A DNA stretch of 64,000 nucleotides from assembly GCA_965113315.1 (NCBI GenBank), contig OZ220365.1; one strand, written 5' to 3'. The first letter of the stretch is position 1. Every line of letters begins with the position of its first letter. Positions 1 through 32,291 of this stretch are shown piece by piece. Made by a program: the position numbers and the translations under genes. Below the pieces are notes generated by a model. It made no database searches. It saw only the letters and a list, made by a program, of their open reading frames with translations, and was not told where the DNA came from. Source of the stretch: Podarcis vaucheri. Lineage: Eukaryota.

Positions 1-523
1 GTCTTGTGTGAGGTCTCAGTTTCAGCTCTCCAGACGGCTAGTTGTTTGCATTTGTCCCAGAGTGCAGGGTGGATTTTGTTACATAGTTTGAGGTGAAGAG
101 TGAGCAGATCTTTGTTGGTTTGGTTTAGTAGGTATCTTTTCTTATGTATTTCGTTTCTGATTAGGGATAGTTCAGTTCGTTTCAGGATCCTTTCGGTAGC
201 TGGGGTTTTAGAGTGGAATTTAAGTTGGAAGCATGTGGGAGTTAAGTTGTTGTCTCGGCAGTTGCGTAGGAACAGGAGATCACATAAGATGGTGGCTCTT
301 CGGATTTCTAGTTTCTCGTAGGTTCTTGTCAGCTGGAAGGTTTCCTCCCCGTAGAGGTGAGATATTTGCTTTCGTAGATTTTCACGGGTACAGGAATGCA
401 GGTTTTGGTGTCTTCGGGTGTCTTCCCGTGTAAGAGTCGGGGTGTCTGTGCGACGTTTCGACGAGGTCTCACTCGTCATCTTCAGGCTGGTGCTTTCGGC
501 TTCTTGTTACTGGAACAGAGCAG
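1..523 (-). mobile_element. Inverted (mirror) copy of the same PLE 5' end, truncated by the window edge
   Basis: 1-512 is the reverse complement of 521-1032 (position sum 1033; mirrored ORFs 100..321/712..933 and 233..433/600..800 are identical); 513-523 continues as the reverse complement of 3471-3481. Confidence 0.95.
450..487 (-). ncRNA. Mirror copy of the hammerhead-like motif
   Basis: Reverse complement of 546-583. Confidence 0.65.
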
Positions 524-545
524 TAACAAGAAGCCGAAAGCACCA

Positions 546-583
546 GCCTGAAGATGACGAGTGAGACCTCGTCGAAACGTCGC
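546..583 (+). ncRNA. Minimal hammerhead ribozyme-like motif in 5' pLTR
   Basis: GC-CTGAAGA-T-GACGAG-tgagac-CTCGTC-GAAAC-GTC-GC: conserved core boxes, 6-bp stem II, palindromic ACGT in place of stem III; only 2 bp of stem I visible. Confidence 0.7.
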
Positions 584-3274
584 ACAGACACCCCGACTCT
601 TACACGGGAAGACACCCGAAGACACCAAAACCTGCATTCCTGTACCCGTGAAAATCTACGAAAGCAAATATCTCACCTCTACGGGGAGGAAACCTTCCAG
701 CTGACAAGAACCTACGAGAAACTAGAAATCCGAAGAGCCACCATCTTATGTGATCTCCTGTTCCTACGCAACTGCCGAGACAACAACTTAACTCCCACAT
801 GCTTCCAACTTAAATTCCACTCTAAAACCCCAGCTACCGAAAGGATCCTGAAACGAACTGAACTATCCCTAATCAGAAACGAAATACATAAGAAAAGATA
901 CCTACTAAACCAAACCAACAAAGATCTGCTCACTCTTCACCTCAAACTATGTAACAAAATCCACCCTGCACTCTGGGACAAATGCAAACAACTAGCCGTC
1001 TGGAGAGCTGAAACTGAGACCTCACACAAGACAGACAGACACACCAACAAACTCTACAAACTAGAGAAACGCCAGAAACCCAGCCACCCTCCACAACAAC
1101 CCATGAAACAAACAGTACATAACATATCAGACAGGATCCTCACCCCAACTGAAACCAAAGTACTCTCCAAAGGTTTCAACTTTGCAGTCGCCCCCAGACG
1201 CATCCCCACGGAAAACATCATATGCGGAGTCGAAGCTAGCCTGACCAAAATCGACCCAGATGAAGCCAATAAAATCAGACTTGAAGTCACCAACATCCTT
1301 TGCTCCAGCAAACCACCCAGAAGCAATTTACACAAAGAAGAACAGAAAGCACTCACCAACCTGAGGAAAGACAACAACATAATCATTCTCCCAGCAGACA
1401 AAGGCAACGCCACTGTTGTGATGAACACATCGGACTACCAAGCAAAACTATCAAATCTACTCCAAGACCCTACCTACCAACCTATAAAAACAGATCCCAC
1501 CACCTATCTGGAAAAAACCACCAAATCCAAAATAAAAGCCTCTCCTATCAGTGAAGAAATCCAGCTAAGAATCATCCCCAGAGAAAAATCTTCCAGATGC
1601 CCCAAACTCTACGGTCTCCCCAAGATACACAAAGAAGGAACACCACTCAGACCAATAGTCAGCTCCATAGGCTCACCTCTACAAAATCTCGCTAAATTTC
1701 TCGCTAAGCAACTTCAGCCCTATGCAGAATCCATCGCTTCACACGTTACTAACTCCTTCCAGTTCATAGAAACAATAAAGAAGCAATACCTACATCCCGA
1801 TGACCTACTTGTGAGCTTCGATGTTGTATCTCTCTTCACTCAAGTGCCCATTAATGAAGCCTTGACAGCCATTCAAAACAAATACAACCCCCCCAAATAC
1901 ATCCTGGACCTGACCAACCACTGCCTAACCAACACGTACTTCATCCACAATGGACAAAGATACAAACAGATAGAAGGAGCACCTATGGGATCACCCCTCT
2001 CACCGGTCATCGCAAATTTGTACATGGAACACTTTGAAACCAATGCTTTAGACAAGTCAGAACACAAACCCAAACTTTGGCTCAGATATGTTGACGACAC
2101 CTTTGTAATTTGGCCACACGGGAAAGAAAAACTAGATAGCTTCCTCACACATCTCAACAGCCTACACCCCAAAATACAATTCACTATGGAAATAGAAGAC
2201 AACAACCAACTCCCCTTTCTTGACGTCCTAATCTACAAAAAACCTGATGGCTCCCTAGGACACACTATCTACCAGAAAAAAACACACACCAACCGCTACT
2301 TACATGCACAATCACACCACCACCCTGCACAAATAAACTCCGTAGCCAAGACTCTCATCTCCAGAACCAAACGCCTGGCTGACAAAGACCACTTGACAAC
2401 TGAGTTACAGAATCTCTCAAATGTGTTAATCGCCAATGGATACCAGAAAAACAGGGTTACGAAGCTAATCCAAAAAGAAACACCCCCCAAAAACCAAGAC
2501 ACAGAAGAAAACAATGGCATGGCCCTCCTTCCTTATATCAAGGGCACTACAGACAAAATCAGCAAAATCCTCCATAAACACAATATCAAAACAGCCTTCT
2601 GCACCAACCAAAAAATAGCCAATATCCTCAGAAACCCAAAAGACAAAATCCAGCTGGAAAACCAAGGGGTCTATGAAATACCCTGCAAAGTCTGCCCAGC
2701 CACGTACATTGGACAAACAAACAGACGAATAAATGCACGTATCGCAGAACACAAGAATGCCGTCAAAAAAGAAGAAAAAACTTCCTCTCTTTTCCAACAC
2801 ATGAAAGAAACAGGACACGAAATTAATTTTGCAGATTCCAAATTGCTCTTTAACATGGAACATCACCACAAGAGAATAATCATGGAAGCCATCGAGATAG
2901 AGAAACACCCTCACAACATGAACAAGCGTGACGACACGTCCCGCCTGCCAGACATCTGGAAATTAGCCCTCCCCACAAAAACCGACACCAGAACCAGAGG
3001 CACACAGAACGCCGTCACCAATCAACCACACCAGACCCAAACCCAGACCCTCTCCACAGACATATTACAGACTCCATCCAGTAGCCAAACTATAGTGGCA
3101 CCTCCGGATGCTGCACCCCCCTGCAAGCCCTACACAGATCTGGCTGGCACAAGGCACAAAACCACAGCTCGCCCCTATACACGAAGCCAAGCCAGAGCAC
3201 AACTAAATGCAGCACAGCCATCTTCTCAGAAAAACTCTTCACAAGCTCAAGAGGTCAAGACACAAAAGCTTTAG
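554..3274 (+). CDS. Penelope-like retroelement (Poseidon-like) ORF: N-terminal domain, reverse transcriptase and C-terminal GIY-YIG endonuclease, 906 aa, uninterrupted
   Basis: PLE RT motifs ADKG, LYGLPKIHK..PLRPIVS, SFDVVSLFT, GAPMGSPLSPVIANLYM, LRYVDD (2087-2098), LPFLDV; GIY-YIG GVYEIPC..C..YIGQT..R..EH starting 2666; no Cys-rich linker between RT and EN. Confidence 0.95.
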   Translation: MTSETSSKRRTDTPTLTREDTRRHQNLHSCTRENLRKQISHLYGEETFQLTRTYEKLEIRRATILCDLLFLRNCRDNNLTPTCFQLKFHSKTPATERILKRTELSLIRNEIHKKRYLLNQTNKDLLTLHLKLCNKIHPALWDKCKQLAVWRAETETSHKTDRHTNKLYKLEKRQKPSHPPQQPMKQTVHNISDRILTPTETKVLSKGFNFAVAPRRIPTENIICGVEASLTKIDPDEANKIRLEVTNILCSSKPPRSNLHKEEQKALTNLRKDNNIIILPADKGNATVVMNTSDYQAKLSNLLQDPTYQPIKTDPTTYLEKTTKSKIKASPISEEIQLRIIPREKSSRCPKLYGLPKIHKEGTPLRPIVSSIGSPLQNLAKFLAKQLQPYAESIASHVTNSFQFIETIKKQYLHPDDLLVSFDVVSLFTQVPINEALTAIQNKYNPPKYILDLTNHCLTNTYFIHNGQRYKQIEGAPMGSPLSPVIANLYMEHFETNALDKSEHKPKLWLRYVDDTFVIWPHGKEKLDSFLTHLNSLHPKIQFTMEIEDNNQLPFLDVLIYKKPDGSLGHTIYQKKTHTNRYLHAQSHHHPAQINSVAKTLISRTKRLADKDHLTTELQNLSNVLIANGYQKNRVTKLIQKETPPKNQDTEENNGMALLPYIKGTTDKISKILHKHNIKTAFCTNQKIANILRNPKDKIQLENQGVYEIPCKVCPATYIGQTNRRINARIAEHKNAVKKEEKTSSLFQHMKETGHEINFADSKLLFNMEHHHKRIIMEAIEIEKHPHNMNKRDDTSRLPDIWKLALPTKTDTRTRGTQNAVTNQPHQTQTQTLSTDILQTPSSSQTIVAPPDAAPPCKPYTDLAGTRHKTTARPYTRSQARAQLNAAQPSSQKNSSQAQEVKTQKL

Positions 3275-3443
3275 CAACTAATCTACACTTAATGACCCAC
3301 CCAGTGGTATTCAGAATATCACTCATGAAATCACTCAAGATATCCCTCAAGTAATTAAGGAACAAAAGAAGAAGAGGCACACTAATCTAGGAACTTCCTC
3401 TCTGCCCAGAACGTTGGAGGCTATACACCACACCCCTCAACAG

Positions 3444-3451
3444 TATTTATA
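3444..3451 (+). promoter_or_regulatory. TATA-like box (TATTTATA) of the PLE pLTR
   Basis: Lies 27 nt upstream of 3471, the position equivalent to the fold-back apex at 513-523. Confidence 0.5.
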
Positions 3452-3506
3452 GGAACTCAAACACCAGATTCTGCTCTGTTCCAGTAACAAGAAGCCGAAA
3501 GCACCA

Positions 3507-3544
3507 GCCTGAAGATGACGAGTGAGACCTCGTCGAAACGTCGC
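3507..3544 (+). ncRNA. Minimal hammerhead ribozyme-like motif in 3' pLTR
   Basis: Identical to 546-583 (CTGAAGA at 3509-3515). Confidence 0.7.
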
Positions 3545-3597
3545 ACAGACACCCCGACTCTTACACGGGAAGACACCCGAAGACACCAAAACCTGCA

Positions 3598-3624
3598 CAT
3601 ATATATATATATATATATATATAT
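3598..3624. repeat. (AT)n microsatellite at PLE 3' junction
   Basis: catatatatat... immediately after pLTR end. Confidence 0.9.
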
Positions 3625-5339
3625 CTTGTCCAGCCTATTTTAGATCATATATATATTTTTAATGATTCTCAAAACTTACGGATCCCTGACAATTTTAAAA
3701 ATGAAATTATTACCCAACTAGCCTGATAATCTATTTTCATACTTTAAACATACTGAAAGTGTTCTATGAGAAATGTGAACTATTGTGGCCCACAATGAAG
3801 ATAAGAGGTGGATGCAAACAGCGTTTGTATAAAAGCCAGCTGGCAGGGTTTTTTTTTTAATATGCATAGAATTGCATCCAAACTGCACAAAGAATGCATG
3901 TAGGAGACAGAAGACTGGATATGGTTGTCACAGCAACTCCTAATACCAAAATAGTTTATTGGAAGGAGACTGGTTCATGACAGTGGTAGGCGTAATCCGC
4001 TGCCCTTCACCATCTCTGGTGTATAGCTTTGGTCTGTTCCTTCTGATTATGAGACATTATTCCAACTCTGCAAGCTTCCTAACCGAGCTTCCTTCAAGTA
4101 GGATGGGGGGGGGCAGGGCTTGAGGCTTAAGAACACCCCATCCTACTTGAAAATCTCTGCTTGTCAGAGCTCTAATTGTGACAGCAAAGCACATACTGCA
4201 GTACTTAAGCAAACCAACTGTGACAGTAAACATATATTTTCTTAAGTGATCATTACGTAATAATTTCAACTCTTTGAAGTTAATTTTGTTTTTAACTTTT
4301 AGGCTGTAGTTTTTTGTTTGTTTTTAGTCTAATAATACCAGTTTTCCATTTATCTCAGTAAAACCACCCTATAAAGTGGGACTGGATGACTAGGAGAGGC
4401 CGACTTAAGCTGTGTCTTTGTTGGCACAAAAATCAGGTCAGTTTAACAATGATTGCACCATAATATGCAACTTGTTGGGATCTTCAGGAATAGTGTTGCA
4501 TGGTCATCCTTAATCTTAGTCTCTAGATTCTAGAGTTAGATATTCCTGACCCAAAACCTCTGTGGTCCAATCCAGTGGGAAGCCTATTTCAACTCAAATC
4601 TGCCCAATATAAATGGTGAAGTATCAAATTTTAAAATAAAGGAGGCAAATGAATGCGGGTGTCTAACCAATTACTCCCTGGAAGTCTCTTCTTTTTCCTC
4701 AGCTGAGCTCCAGAGCAGTAGTCTCTGCTGAAAAAAAGGCACTGCTAAAAGAAAGGCACAGAGCCGCTTCCTTTGTTACCTTAACAATACTTAGCTAGAA
4801 GGCCACTATCGCATCGAGAAGCGAGCCTGGCTGTTTCAGGAATTTGAATAGAATAGTTGCACTGGAGTGCAGAAGGAGTTAAAATGTAGTTTGCACACTT
4901 TAAAAATGTCTTCATATCTAGTAGTACACAAAGGATAAGCAAACCAGAATAGCTGTTATGAATACAACCAAGTTTTTTTTTAATGTAGTATTTCTTGAAA
5001 ACAAGGTTTAAATAACACAAAAAATTATTAGATGCTTTGAAACGGCTGTGAGCTCAGTACTGCAGGAGGAGCTCAGTACTGTGGAGGAAGAGACGAATCC
5101 AGGAAATCAATATAGAGGAACAAAAGAAATAAAAATACCATAAGAATATCTCACAGTTGTTCTATGAAGAACTAACCCACAACCTGAAGGGTGGCTGATC
5201 TAATCAAAGAAGAATGTAAAATTCTGCATAGGATTAGTTCTCCAGACCTTCTCTTAGTCAAAGAAATGAACAAATAACTAGTGAAGGTTTTCAGTAAAGT
5301 GTCTGGATTGGGTTGCATTGTGAAGGTTTATCTTTGTCA

Positions 5340-6030
5340 GGCTGTGGTTTAGTGGTTAGAATGTTGGACTAAGACAGTGTTTCCCAACCACTGTTCCGCG
5401 GCATACTAGTGTGCCGCGAGATGTTGCCTGGTGTGCCGCGAGATGTTGCCTGGAGGGAGGCGGGCGAGTTGGGCAGCGAGAGGCGAGAGGCGGGGCGGCG
5501 GCGGCGAGGAGAGGCCGCCCAGCGCGGGGCTCTCGCCGTCTGCCTGCCTGGCTGCCTGCGAGCTCGGCGGGCAGCGCCTCCGTCCGCAGCGCCCGCCTCG
5601 CAGCTCTCATTCCCTGCCAAAGCTCACCCAGCCAAGCCGCGCTCTCCTTCCTGCCTCGCTTTGCTGCCTCCTCCCCCCCCACCCCAAAGCTTGGAGGTTC
5701 CCCGGCAAGGGGGAGGGGAAAAAATTGAAACTTACACTTTCGTGCGTCCCTCCCGGCGTGACGCTGCGCGCTGACGTCACGGGGCTGTAATGGTGGTGTG
5801 CCTCGAGATTTTTTTCATCAAACAAGTGTGCCTTTGCCCAAAAAAGTTTGGGAAACACTGGACTAAGAGACCAAAGCGCAAAACCCTACTCAGGAAGTTC
5901 ATTGGGTGACCTTGGCCCAGTCTTAGCTTAACTCACCTCATAGGGTTGTTTTCTGAGGAGAAAATGAGGAAGAGCCGAGGAGGAGAACCATGAAGGCCAC
6001 CTTGAGCTTAGAGGAAAGGTGGATGTAAAC
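5340..6030 (+). mobile_element. Old tRNA-derived MIR/CORE-like SINE, interrupted by a hAT MITE
   Basis: A-box-like gtggtttagtggttagaatgttggact before the MITE; gggtgaccttggcccagtc..ctcacctcatagggttgtt after it; similar to copy at 8268-8440. Confidence 0.6.
5375..5860. mobile_element. hAT-superfamily non-autonomous MITE, CpG-rich
   Basis: 13-bp TIRs CAGTGTTTCCCAA / TTGGGAAACACTG; perfect 8-bp TSD GACTAAGA (5367-5374, 5861-5868). Confidence 0.92.
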
Positions 6031-6769
6031 ACAACAAAGCATAGGCATCATTTATAGACTTGGCAATAAATGTCATCTGTTTATCTAGGGGAAGAGAGGA
6101 ATCAATAATCAAACAATGTCTCCATTGGACGGAAGCAGAAGCAACTGCTTCAGGGAGTCAGGTGCTGGGACCAGGGGCGAGCTCATGAAGGACAGAGGTG
6201 TGTGCGCAGCTAGGTGGTCAGTCCTTCACCTGCAGCGGAGGACGCTGTTTCCGCTATTGCCAGTGGTGTAGAATGAGTCAATTCCCAGTTTGATCAGATT
6301 CTGTACTGGAAAGGAGAGACCTCGTGTCCTTTGCCTCTGATCCCATCGCCGGCTCCAAACATCGCTTGTAGCAGTCGCCTCTTTTTTGCCTAATAGGATC
6401 AGCCCTGATTTTAGCTTCAAAGAGGCTCCTAGAGTATCGATAGGTTGTGTAAACAGGGATCAAATACAAGCGTCTGCATAATTATTTTTGTAAGATGCTT
6501 GTGCACGTGTAGCCTCCCCCCCCTTTTAACATATGTTTGCATTTTAAATATCTAAAATCCCAGTGCACCCGACCGTAGACTATTCAGAAGTAGCATGTTC
6601 AGTCCTCAAGGAAACTTCAGAGCTTTTAAGTGATAATTCACCAGCATAGCTTCCTTTCTTCCCGACCACGAATGATGCACAGTCAACTCTCTCCTATTCG
6701 CAGCCATTTAATCCTGAGCAGAGAAAACGGTACGGAAGGGCAGTTGCAGAATCCATTTGCGACTAGCGA

Positions 6770-7520
6770 CTTGCATAGAATAGCCTTCGGCGCCTCGCTC
6801 TCGATTCCAGAAACCGGACGGAAAACAAAACGAACTCCATTTCCCAGCATGCCCCGGGCCCGCCCTCTCAACGCTCGTTCCCCTCCCTCTGCCGTGTCCC
6901 TAGCCGGGCGCCGTAGCAGCCGGCGGGGGCGGCTGTCAGGCGTCTGACGGCGGGCAGGACGCGCCCAGTTTGTTGCTGCTTCCACCGAGACGCGGCTGCC
7001 TGACTAGCGGGGCGCGGGCGTCGTCGGCGTCGTCGTCAGCGGCGGCGGCTCCAGGGGCTGCCCGGCGGTGGGGACTGCGTGGCGGCCTCGGGCCGCGGCG
7101 ACGGCTCCGGCCATGGACGAGCAGGCGGGGCCCGGGGTCTTCTTCAGCAACAACAACAACAACAACGCGCTGCTGCTGCCGCCGCCTCCGGGCGGGGCCG
7201 GGCAAGGGCTGGAGCCGGGGGAGGCGGCGGCGGCGGCGGCTGCAGCCGTAGCGGCGGCGGCCGGAGGCTCCTCGGCGGTCCCGGCTCCGGCCTCTGCGGC
7301 GCGGGCTCAGTACAGCGTCCCGGGCATCCTGCACTTCCTGCAGCACGAGTGGGGCCGCTTCGAGGCCGAGAGAGCCGAGTGGGAGGCGGAGCGGGCGGAG
7401 CTGCAGGTACCGTCCGGCCGCTTTCCCTTCGCCTTTCGCCTCGTCCGGGCCGCCGCCTCTTCTATGCAAACATCTCCACACGCGCGACTCTTCCTTCCCC
7501 TTCTCCGCCCGGACCTGTCT
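6770..7520. promoter_or_regulatory. CpG island / STRN promoter and exon 1
   Basis: Very high GC and CpG density surrounding the STRN start codon, GC-box-like motifs. Confidence 0.85.
7113..7406 (+). CDS. STRN: STRN exon 1 (caveolin-binding region, start of coiled coil)
   Basis: GCCATGG Kozak; MDEQAGPGVFFSNN...QYSVPGILHFLQHEWGRFEAERAEWEAERAELQ; donor CAG|gtaccg. Confidence 0.96.
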
Positions 7521-8267
7521 GCTGTTCTTCTCTCCTCCCTCCCTCCCCCATCCCTCTCTTCTCCGTTCTTCCCCATCGGTTGGAGGGTTTAGCCTCGGAA
7601 CTGTGGAGGATGACTGTGCCTCTGAGCATATGCAGAGCGCCTTTGCCTTGAGTGATTACAGTCAGCGCGCACTCGCAACCTGGGGGTTTTGGGGAGGGTT
7701 TCTAGCTTGTCTAAGCTGGCGGGGTCTTTCTTCTAAAGAAGCAAAGCCCTGGTTAGTGTTAGGCAGGAAGGGGCTAACAGGAGAGCTTCCTTTGACAACT
7801 GTTAGCTTGGGTCAGGCTTGCCTGTAGGATGCACAGATGCTTGGTGCCTCGATAATATTATGGTTTTGGTCCCAGCAGAACATGAGTTGTGTATGTGCCT
7901 CCTTGCTCCACATGGGAATAGAAAAGGAGAGAGGATGTGATCTGGTAGTTGCTCTCCCAAGTACTACCCTTTTGAGAAGGAAATTATCAGAGATTTGTGT
8001 GATGTCTGTTAGTTGTCTTTAACCAATATAGAATTGATGCGTCCCGCATGTGAAACAGCTTTGTTTTGGAATGTTGACTCAGTATGTGTGAACATTTTTC
8101 AAAGCACATCACATACATTGTCTGAGAAATACATTGTCTGAGAAATACTTACAACAGTCCTGTAAAATAGAGTGATATTAATATCCTCACCTGCTGAAGG
8201 CAGTTCCATTCAAATGGCAAGGGCCTGCTCCCTGTTTCTCTGTGCCCACTCACCCATCTTTCATGGA

Positions 8268-29422: not shown

Positions 29423-29576
29423 GTGGGCTGAGAACTCTTAATCATAGAACAAGACTTTCAGTGATGGGATCTTAAAAATCATGATATGGCATATATTCCA
29501 ATCATGTGTGAGCAAATGCAAAGATAAAAAAAATTCCTTCCAGTAGCACCTTAAAGACCAACTAAGTTAGTTCTTG

Positions 29577-29614
29577 GTATGAGCTTTCGTGTGCATGCAC
29601 ACTTCTTCAGATAC
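29577..29614 (-). ncRNA. Mirror copy of minimal hammerhead ribozyme
   Basis: Reverse complement of 31836-31873. Confidence 0.82.
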
Positions 29615-29647
29615 ACTGAAACAGAAGTTGCCAGATCCTTCTATATA
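29615..29647 (-). promoter_or_regulatory. Mirror TATA + Inr core promoter, antisense to STRN
   Basis: Reverse complement of 31803-31835. Confidence 0.55.
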
Positions 29648-29793
29648 GTGAGAAGGTGGGGAGGGGTGTTACTCAGAAGGGTGGTGGGAATGGGAGATAG
29701 GCAGATAGCTGGGAGAGCCTGTTGACGACTCTTAACGACTGTAATAGGTCTTACAGGAAAAGGCAAGGGGTGAGGAGGTGAGAAATGGTTTAG

Positions 29794-30636
29794 TCATGTA
29801 TAGTGAGATAAGAATCCAATGTCTTTGTTAAGCCCAGGTTTTTCCATGGTTTTAAGTTTGGTAATGAGTTGTAATTCAGCAGCTTCTCTTTCCAGTCTGT
29901 TTCTGAAATTCCTTTGTAGTAAAACAGCTACTTTGAGATCTTGTATAGAATGTCCTGGGAGATTGAAGTGTTCTCCTACTGGTTTCTCTGTTTTGTGATT
30001 CTTGATGTCAGATTTATGTCCGTTTATTCTTTGGCGTAAGGTTTGGCCTGTTTGTCCAATATAGAGAGCTGAAGGACACTGTTGGCATTTGATGGCATAC
30101 ACAATGTTAGACGATGAGCAATTAAATAGTCCCGAGATGGTATGTGTGATGTTGTTGGGGCCAGTAATGGTGTTGTCCGGGTGTATGTGGCAGCAAAGTT
30201 GGCATCTGGGTTTATTGCAGGCTCTGGTGCCAGTGTCTGTGTTAAGTCTGGTTGTAGTATTATTGTGGGTTAGGAGTTGTTTAAGATTGGGTGGCTGTCT
30301 GTAGGCAATGAAAGGTCTTCCTCCCAGAGCTTGAGAAAGAGAACTGTCATTGTCCAGGAGAGGTTGTAGATCTCTGATGATGCGTTGTACTGTTTTAACT
30401 TGGGAGCTGTATGTGATGACTAGAGGTGTTCTGTTATTTTCTTTTTTGGGTCTGTCTTGCAGCAAGTTCTCTCTGGGTATCAGTCTGGCTCTGTTGATCT
30501 GTTGTCTAACTTCATCTGCTGGGTATTTTAGTTCTGAGAAGGTTTGCTGTAGATCTCTTAGGTGAGAGTCTCTGTCTGTAGAATTGGAACAGATGCGGCT
30601 GTAACGTAGTGCCTGGCTATATACAATGGACTGTTT
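29794..30636 (-). pseudogene. Mirror copy of the truncated Neptune-like ORF
   Basis: Translation identical from KQSIVYSQ to FLSHYT. Confidence 0.9.
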
Positions 30637-31656
30637 AAATTTAATGATTTTCACCCCACAATCAACCTTACAATGAATCAATCTATGCAAGAAATACATT
30701 TTTTGGACACTACTATAAAAATACAGGATGGGCGCATAGACACCACCTTATACCGCAAACCAACTGACCGACAAACATATCTACATGCCTCTAGCTACCA
30801 TCCCAAACATACCAAACAGTCCATTGTATATAGCCAGGCACTACGTTACAGCCGCATCTGTTCCAATTCTACAGACAGAGACTCTCACCTAAGAGATCTA
30901 CAGCAAACCTTCTCAGAACTAAAATACCCAGCAGATGAAGTTAGACAACAGATCAACAGAGCCAGACTGATACCCAGAGAGAACTTGCTGCAAGACAGAC
31001 CCAAAAAAGAAAATAACAGAACACCTCTAGTCATCACATACAGCTCCCAAGTTAAAACAGTACAACGCATCATCAGAGATCTACAACCTCTCCTGGACAA
31101 TGACAGTTCTCTTTCTCAAGCTCTGGGAGGAAGACCTTTCATTGCCTACAGACAGCCACCCAATCTTAAACAACTCCTAACCCACAATAATACTACAACC
31201 AGACTTAACACAGACACTGGCACCAGAGCCTGCAATAAACCCAGATGCCAACTTTGCTGCCACATACACCCGGACAACACCATTACTGGCCCCAACAACA
31301 TCACACATACCATCTCGGGACTATTTAATTGCTCATCGTCTAACATTGTGTATGCCATCAAATGCCAACAGTGTCCTTCAGCTCTCTATATTGGACAAAC
31401 AGGCCAAACCTTACGCCAAAGAATAAACGGACATAAATCTGACATCAAGAATCACAAAACAGAGAAACCAGTAGGAGAACACTTCAATCTCCCAGGACAT
31501 TCTATACAAGATCTCAAAGTAGCTGTTTTACTACAAAGGAATTTCAGAAACAGACTGGAAAGAGAAGCTGCTGAATTACAACTCATTACCAAACTTAAAA
31601 CCATGGAAAAACCTGGGCTTAACAAAGACATTGGATTCTTATCTCACTATACATGA
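30637..31656 (+). pseudogene. 5'-truncated PLE ORF: RT C-terminus/thumb, Cys-rich linker, GIY-YIG endonuclease
   Basis: FNDFHPTINLT..IHFLDT..LYRKPTD..YLHASSYHP; CNKPRCQLC linker (Neptune-type); NIVYAIKCQQC..LYIGQT..R..H; GLN; RT catalytic core missing. Confidence 0.9.
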
Positions 31657-31802
31657 CTAAACCATTTCTCACCTCCTCACCCCTTGCCTTTTCCTGTAAG
31701 ACCTATTACAGTCGTTAAGAGTCGTCAACAGGCTCTCCCAGCTATCTGCCTATCTCCCATTCCCACCACCCTTCTGAGTAACACCCCTCCCCACCTTCTC
31801 AC

Positions 31803-31835
31803 TATATAGAAGGATCTGGCAACTTCTGTTTCAGT
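31803..31835 (+). promoter_or_regulatory. TATA + Inr core promoter of pLTR
   Basis: TATATAGA at 31803 and TCAGT Inr at 31831-31835 (A+1 = 31833, spacing 30 nt). Confidence 0.6.
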
Positions 31836-31873
31836 GTATCTGAAGAAGTGTGCATGCACACGAAAGCTCATAC
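31836..31873 (+). ncRNA. Minimal type I hammerhead ribozyme in Neptune-like pLTR
   Basis: GTAT-CTGAAGA-A-GTGTGC-AT-GCACAC-GAAA-GC-TC-ATAC: stem I GTAT/ATAC, core CUGAAGA and GAAA, stem II, palindromic AGCT stem III, predicted cut after C31869. Confidence 0.85.
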
Positions 31874-32291
31874 CAAGAACTAACTTAGTTGGTCTTTAAG
31901 GTGCTACTGGAAGGAATTTTTTTTATTTTGACTATGGCAGACCAACACGGCTACCTATCTACTACTGGAACCATCAAATGCAAAGATTTAATCATGGCAC
32001 ATTTTTGCAAGTCGGCCTGATAAATGGTATTCTAGTACTGTATTGCTACCTCCTGTCCAATTAAAAGAAGCCTAGCTTGGCCTCCTCCTCTACAATTTAC
32101 ACACGGCTTTGATTAAATTAGATTAAATTCCCTAGTGTTCTAAAGATTATATAGTACATTAGTATTTAAGTTAGATTTAAAATGAACAGTGATGTATATA
32201 TCCTTCTCTTCTGTCCCCCGCCCCCCGAGTTCAGGGATATGTAGAAATAATACAGACAGAAATGTTTCATTTCATTTTCTGTCCTTCATAG

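Follow-up and report, generated by a model that had tools for sequence, protein, structure and literature searches.

We analysed a 64,000-nucleotide (nt) stretch of DNA from Podarcis vaucheri (assembly GCA_965113315.1, contig OZ220365.1), hereafter referred to as the window, which opens inside a head-to-head pair of copies of a Penelope-like element (PLE). The right-hand copy, which lies in direct orientation at 521-3597 (3,077 nt), is a complete and intact PLE, and the left-hand copy runs in the opposite orientation out of the window. The apex of the pair sits at a recurrent full-length 5' terminus of the element, equivalent to positions 3471-3473, with at least two other copies ending at 3472-3473. 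Two-strand target-primed reverse transcription, followed by annealing of the two products through a microhomology, is the mechanism that we consider most likely to have generated this pair, a reading to which we would assign about an even chance of being correct.

A repeat search of the window revealed two perfect inverted matches that meet at the apex. In the first of these, positions 1-512 are complementary to 521-1032 over 512 nt (100%), with a spacer of 8 nt, and in the second, 397-523 is the reverse complement of 3471-3597 over 127 nt (100%). Direct reading of the junction gave CTG at 510-512, GAACAGAG at 513-520 and CAG at 521-523, with the element letters at 3471-3481 reading CTGCTCTGTTC. 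The spacer at 513-520 is an inverted match to 3474-3481, just 5' of the 3' pseudo-long terminal repeat (pLTR), for which the chance expectation is 4^-8. Since the spacer consists of element letters in inverted orientation, the left arm represents an inverted copy of greater length and did not arise by the right arm folding back; it extends 11 nt beyond the direct copy in the 5' direction, as far as the equivalent of 3471, and comparison with the direct copy demonstrated that it is not 5'-truncated. The two copies are joined over an overlap of 3 nt, with zero letters of the (AT)n target between the arms, and a scripted estimate indicated that an overlap of at least 3 nt is to be expected in approximately 1.5% of random joins of element ends. 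The original prediction, made from the sequence of the window alone, had described mirrored arms, an 8-nt loop that is not random and a left arm continuing to 523, all of which proved exact to the base upon repeat search and reading, and the letters of the terminal CAG and of the CTG at 510-512, which it proposed could pair, were confirmed, the CAG being the 3-nt overlap.

The direct copy contains one open reading frame (ORF), in which a PLE-type reverse transcriptase is followed by a C-terminal GIY-YIG endonuclease. A Pfam search of this ORF returned matches to RVT_1 at amino acids 358-536 (E = 6.7e-15) and to GIY-YIG at amino acids 705-744 (E = 0.0011; 19.7 bits, which is under the Pfam cut-off of 22.6), and motif reading located ADKGNATVV, YVDD and GVYEIPCKVC...YIGQT in the translation. 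The DKG motif, present as LPADKGNATVVM, is positioned N-terminal to the reverse transcriptase core as defined in PMC8557442. Pseudo-LTRs formed by partial tandem duplication are likewise present, with 521-636 identical to 3482-3597. Given that the pLTRs and the arms are 100% identical and that the ORF is intact, the element is young, and its insertion into the (AT)n tract is very recent. No additional copies of the element were found by blastn elsewhere in the 64,000-nt window.

On the basis of features shared with PAc, the Poseidon PLE of Anolis carolinensis (PMC11167929), the element is assigned to the PAc-type Poseidon Penelope-like retrotransposons, the likeness being one of published features. 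In both elements the start codon lies at the start of hammerhead stem II, and the hammerhead cut is located 26 nt past the ORF start in PAc (PMC11167929) and, as predicted after C581, 27 nt past the ATG in the window element. The ATG (554) of the latter falls inside the putative hammerhead core CUGAAGA-U-GACGAG...CUCGUC-GAAA-CGUC, of which stem II (6 bp) was present in the centroid fold and stem I amounts to only about 2 bp by eye. Searches with the Rfam hammerhead models yielded zero matches at E <=1, the only hits being spurious microRNA-like or signal recognition particle-like ones caused by the palindrome, and the 35-nt hammerhead stretch had zero matches in the metagenome contigs scanned. 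Both elements reside in lizard hosts and have AT-rich or (AT)n targets. The RT/GIY-YIG ORF, the pLTRs and the PAc-like layout together support the earlier description of a Poseidon-like PLE.

Contigs of the public runs X1, X5 (organism A) and X6 (organism D), together with raw RNA reads of X23 (organism D), were aligned to positions 1-4200. The DNA runs were represented by short Logan contigs, and copy junctions were drawn from the best-supported joints and loose ends; among the best-supported joints listed there were no strand-change joints. The 3' ends of the family, which would correspond to sites at which reverse transcription starts, were located at 636/637 (+83) and 671 (+118 from the ATG), with 637-671 constituting an optional 'tail', and loose (AT)n ends lay behind 636/637 and 671 in X1, X5, X6 and X23, the left-arm mirror being at 362. 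The first of these sites, 636/637, is within a CACGGG/CCCGUG stem-loop of the predicted RNA fold. [quoted passage not shown]

Two further junctions, both from X1, place the 5' terminus of other copies at the same point of the element as the apex of the window pair. The first is a joint of the form 671-ATATA-3472, present at single-copy depth, in which T3472 may belong to the (AT)n tract and the end is accordingly either 3472 or 3473. The second is a palindromic contig centred on 3473, whose 14 letters preceding the centre (GTTGCTGGAACAGA) form the reverse complement of those that follow; it represents a further head-to-head junction, at which the two arms each terminate at 3473 and overlap by GC. 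The apex position therefore recurs in other copies, a check proposed along with the original prediction, in at least two X1 junctions at 3472-3473. At the junction centred on 3473 the letters of the inverted arm are GTTGCTGG, in place of the GTTACTGG that mirroring the window sequence would give, a mismatch that could reflect a difference between the arms at 12 nt from the apex.

A TATA-like box had been noted upstream of this terminus and was confirmed to start at 3444, 27 nt before 3471. Only two TATA-like octamers occur in the 3,077-nt element, and a mere 0.6% of positions have one situated 25-33 nt upstream. Positions 3471-3473 are plausibly the transcription start, in that T3472/G3473 constitutes a pyrimidine-purine step which, together with the TATA-like box 27-29 nt upstream, fits such a start, and the pLTR is known to contain the transcription start in Penelope and Chlamys (PMC8557442). 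From a 5' terminus at 3471-3473 it follows that the pLTR would be a terminal redundancy, and we infer that the pLTR of a new copy represents the redundancy between this start and the internal start of reverse transcription in the unit that follows in a tandem source. Cleavage by the hammerhead was considered as the cause of the 5' end and rejected, as the predicted cut at 581/582 (equivalent to 3542/3543) is located 61 nt inside the copy; that the hammerhead does not set the 5' end agrees with unprocessed RNA being the main substrate of PAc (PMC11167929).

Features of the head-to-head PLE pair and its immediate surroundings (positions are those of the window)
Feature	Position	Strand	Basis or remark
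Inverted copy, cut by window start	1..523	-	Repeat search; equivalent of 3471-3597, then 637-1032
Contents of inverted copy	Putative hammerhead core 451-485 and first ~160 ORF codons	-	Repeat and motif search
Spacer GAACAGAG	513..520	.	Complement of 3474-3481; left (inverted) copy only
CAG microhomology	521..523	.	Common to end of inverted copy and start of direct copy
5' pLTR of direct copy	521..636	+	Identical to 3482-3597 (116 nt, 100%)
Minimal hammerhead motif	548..582	+	CUGAAGA core, GACGAG/CUCGUC stem II, GAAA, ACGU; reading and centroid fold
Further hammerhead copies	451-485 (-), 3509-3543 (+)		Motif search; three in all
ORF, 906 amino acids, intact	554..3274	+	ORF list, Pfam search, motif reading
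AC-rich stem-loop (roughly 603-650) and following stretch	603..671	+	Holds the two 3' ends of the family
TATA-like octamer TATTTATA	3444..3451	+	27-29 nt upstream of recurrent 5' end
Inferred 5' end of template RNA, candidate transcription start	3471..3473	+	Three DNA junctions
3' pLTR of direct copy	3482..3597	+	Direct repeat; ends at 'no tail' start site
C(AT)13 microsatellite, target at right side of insertion	3598..3624	.	Reading; (AT)n flanks across family

The two arms share a letter that is in the minority within the family, C at 1027 and G at the mirror position 6, with all of the counted family contigs having T at 1027, which indicates that the arms are from one source. Another site, 584, is polymorphic in the family (A/C, with about 29% C in X1). 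Before it is cut by the window start, the left arm extends 396 nt past the pLTR-ORF junction. As reverse transcription of PAc starts only at the pLTR-ORF junction (PMC11167929), and the arm is already 396 nt beyond it, the left arm is probably a whole second unit and not a solo inverted pLTR.

Under the favoured two-strand mechanism, a dimeric element protein would nick both strands of the self-complementary (AT)n target, with each target 3' hydroxyl acting as primer for reverse transcription, which would begin at the internal start site on RNA of a common source. Of the two complementary DNAs (cDNAs), the left one would reach the 5' end of the RNA, whilst the right one would halt 11-14 nt short of it. 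The left cDNA end, ...GAGCAG-3', and the right cDNA end, ...TTACTG-3', could then anneal via CAG/CTG, and each cDNA would be completed using the other as template. The PAc protein, for which a dimer is predicted, both cuts and extends the two strands in vitro (PMC11167929), with start sites that are identical on both strands (PMC11167929), and since (AT)n is self-complementary, the same cleavage site is presented on both strands. In the typical PLE layout, the outer end of an inverted pLTR is the canonical 3' end and a tail is found at one end only (PMC3846280, PMC8557442); both of these features are explained by initiation, and not by the termination of a snap-back copy.

A second and unrelated head-to-head PLE pair, which is Neptune-like, is located at 29513-31987 of the window, with arms at 29521-30636 and 30814-31929. 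It is flanked by a 13-bp direct target duplication, CAAATGCAAAGAT, at 29513-29525 and 31975-31987, and only its right end carries a tail, of about 48 nt. Its centre join is blunt, without microhomology, and it is there that the right copy exceeds the left by 177 nt. The direct duplication, the one-sided tail and the off-centre join of this pair count in favour of two-strand priming.

In classical cDNA cloning with reverse transcriptases in vitro, the 3' end of the first strand folds back and primes its own copying, which gives rise to a perfect inverted repeat with a short loop. Hairpin-primed second-strand synthesis of this kind is not known to serve as a genomic integration route for PLEs. 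Applied to the window pair, snap-back self-priming would have the left cDNA reach 3471, lay its terminal CAG on its own CTG 8 nt back and continue by copying itself, an explanation that is possible, if clearly short of an even chance. It matches the centre exactly, with respect to both the 8-nt spacer and the 3-nt overlap, and it is self-consistent in that a left-first order is the only one possible, the spacer being missing from the right copy; a snap-back that began with the right arm was rejected for this reason. Arms that are 100% identical and that both bear the minority letter at 1027/6 also speak for it. The resulting footprint, however, is identical to that of two-strand priming, and hence is not diagnostic: the original prediction had taken it as specific to hairpin priming, yet two annealed cDNAs give the same sequence, and PAc extends both strands (PMC11167929).

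Predicted folds of the cDNA end lacked the 3-bp stem and 8-nt loop that snap-back calls for. Neither the minimum-energy fold of 500-523 nor that of 480-523 contained the CTG/CAG pairing, and neither sequence folded better than its shuffles (z-scores of -0.3 and +0.3, respectively); GAGCAG or the last letters were left unpaired, with which a microhomology held by the enzyme remains compatible. Moreover, cDNA ends commonly have a CTG no more than a few tens of nt away, there being two in the last 40 nt, and snap-back requires an extra step in which the hairpin unfolds and is joined to the other target end. It also leaves unexplained the position of published inverted pLTRs at canonical start sites of reverse transcription and the usual one-sided tail (PMC3846280, PMC8557442). 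Self-priming is, besides, no new idea for PLEs: it was inferred in 2013 from palindromic sequence where inverted pLTRs are joined, albeit on an antisense RNA template (PMC3846280).

A stronger form of this idea, in which full-length PAc-type elements duplicate by deterministic cDNA snap-back at the capped RNA 5' end, by way of CAG/CTG and an 8-nt loop, appears rather doubtful to us. If it were true, the second strand would be self-primed, perfect palindromes of approximately 6 kb would be a regular product, and the pLTR would simply amount to the segment bounded by the transcription start and the internal start of reverse transcription. A palindrome of approximately 6 kb is expected under snap-back and two-strand priming alike.

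A counterpart to two-strand priming is twin priming of LINE-1 (L1), as reportedly described by Ostertag and Kazazian in 2001, in which two target 3' ends are said to prime and the cDNAs to be joined by microhomology, giving an L1 product with inverted segments within one target duplication. L1 twin priming differs from what is proposed here in that it involves one RNA and leads to an inversion with deletion or duplication, and not to two full mirror copies. For PLEs, unlike in the L1 comparison, both-strand nicking and extension is a property of the enzyme in vitro. A literature search found no paper in which twin priming was applied to PLEs.

Several points weigh against two-strand priming and the candidate transcription start. 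The same centre sequence is predicted equally by snap-back self-priming, and the perfect identity of the arms would follow most simply from one of them having served as template for its partner. The left outer end, the left flank and any target duplication are outside the window, hence the features that separate the models are unseen here. A further 81 joints and 383 loose ends lie outside the best-supported ones from which the junctions were drawn. The evidence for a transcription start consists solely of DNA junctions, and X23, in which RNA depth is only 1-30, had no pile of RNA read starts at any position; the predicted placement of the apex at a transcription start is thus upheld as regards a recurrent 5' end beside a TATA-like box, but not as regards a pile of read starts in this RNA.

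Other routes to the pair, namely self-priming on RNA of an antisense transcript, two independent hits on (AT)n, or subsequent rearrangement or gene conversion between neighbouring copies, seem unlikely. Self-priming on an antisense template was argued for in PMC3846280, and RNA reads of both orientations were about equally frequent at 1541-2380, although direct evidence for such a template is absent. The public-run contigs demonstrated that (AT)n tracts are hit repeatedly by this PLE family, but zero (AT)n letters between the copies and a minority variant in both arms make two hits improbable, and two independent insertions were rejected as the main explanation on these same two grounds, there being no target DNA between the copies. 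The element is also too young to need later homogenisation.

An assembly or sequencing artefact, in which a chimeric long read or a misjoin folded back to make the left arm, was considered very unlikely. The start of the window within the left arm, the perfect identity of the arms, the lack of any short DNA contig spanning the stretch and the known disturbance of assemblies by inverted structures of PLEs (PMC8557442) would each be in keeping with an artefact. The spacer, however, consists of genuine element letters that are missing at the 5' end of the right copy and that a fold-back of the right arm could not have made; the apex is at the canonical 5' end of the family and not at a random position; and an independent X1 contig has a similar head-to-head junction at 3473. 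The head-to-head architecture is, furthermore, textbook for endonuclease-positive (EN+) PLEs.

EN+ PLEs (PMC8557442, PMC3846280) resemble the window pair in having direct pLTRs and an inverted copy that abuts the upstream pLTR, as well as microsatellite targets, an optional tail and a short overlap at the inverted junction. In Adineta vaga, inverted junctions have been described with a 15-bp overlap and with palindromes of 18 and 38 bp (PMC3846280, PMC8557442). Unlike the published inverted pLTRs, the inverted copy of the window pair has the full 5' end, with 11 additional nt, and continues into the ORF for at least 396 nt. The PAc study (PMC11167929) contains neither head-to-head full-length pairs nor mapping of RNA 5' ends.

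With regard to copy number, the flank at 3633-4200 is single-copy, and the summed depth of the element is very large and rises toward the 3' end, which is the usual 5'-truncation gradient. Many X1 contigs join 1496, 2353, 2630, 2837 or 3468 to 3071, which points to deletion derivatives or to a non-autonomous subfamily having no more than the last ~530 nt in common with the element. The RNA depth of X23 was 23-31 across the C-terminal part of the ORF, dropped to 0.8-6 at 3081-3360 and rose again at the pLTR. The interval 3081-3360 comprises the last ~190 nt of the ORF and the 3' untranslated region, and DNA depth in the same species shifts at most about twofold there. This coverage profile agrees with that described for PAc, and suggests that continuous multi-unit RNAs make up a minority of the transcripts. 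X23 read pairs of both orientations were approximately equal over 1541-2380, which lies in the reverse transcriptase region, and antisense transcripts of the family may exist.

At least half of the sampled 31-letter words of positions 1-6000 occurred in runs labelled as seven different organisms (A-G), with the element making up 60% of this stretch, and near-identical family copies seem to be common to several related species. The best match among DNA runs was labelled organism A, and most RNA runs were labelled organism D. A GC-rich, CpG-island-like stretch with runs of GGC/GCC triplets was present at 5400-7600 (57% GC at 6001-8000), approximately 2-4 kb downstream of the PLE pair.

The origin of the tandem and inverted structures of PLEs has been called undefined (PMC8557442), and the steps of PAc integration after first-strand synthesis have not been validated (PMC11167929). 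The additions made by this locus are modest, and consist of an apex at a recurrent 5' terminus by a TATA-like box and of an inverted copy without 5' truncation. It fixes the full-length 5' end of the element to 3471-3473 beside the TATA-like box and provides one data point for a microhomology join. If the left arm is complete, the locus would form a perfect palindrome of approximately 6.2 kb around an 8-nt spacer, the CpG island lying a few kb downstream of it, and such a palindrome would be expected to be unstable.

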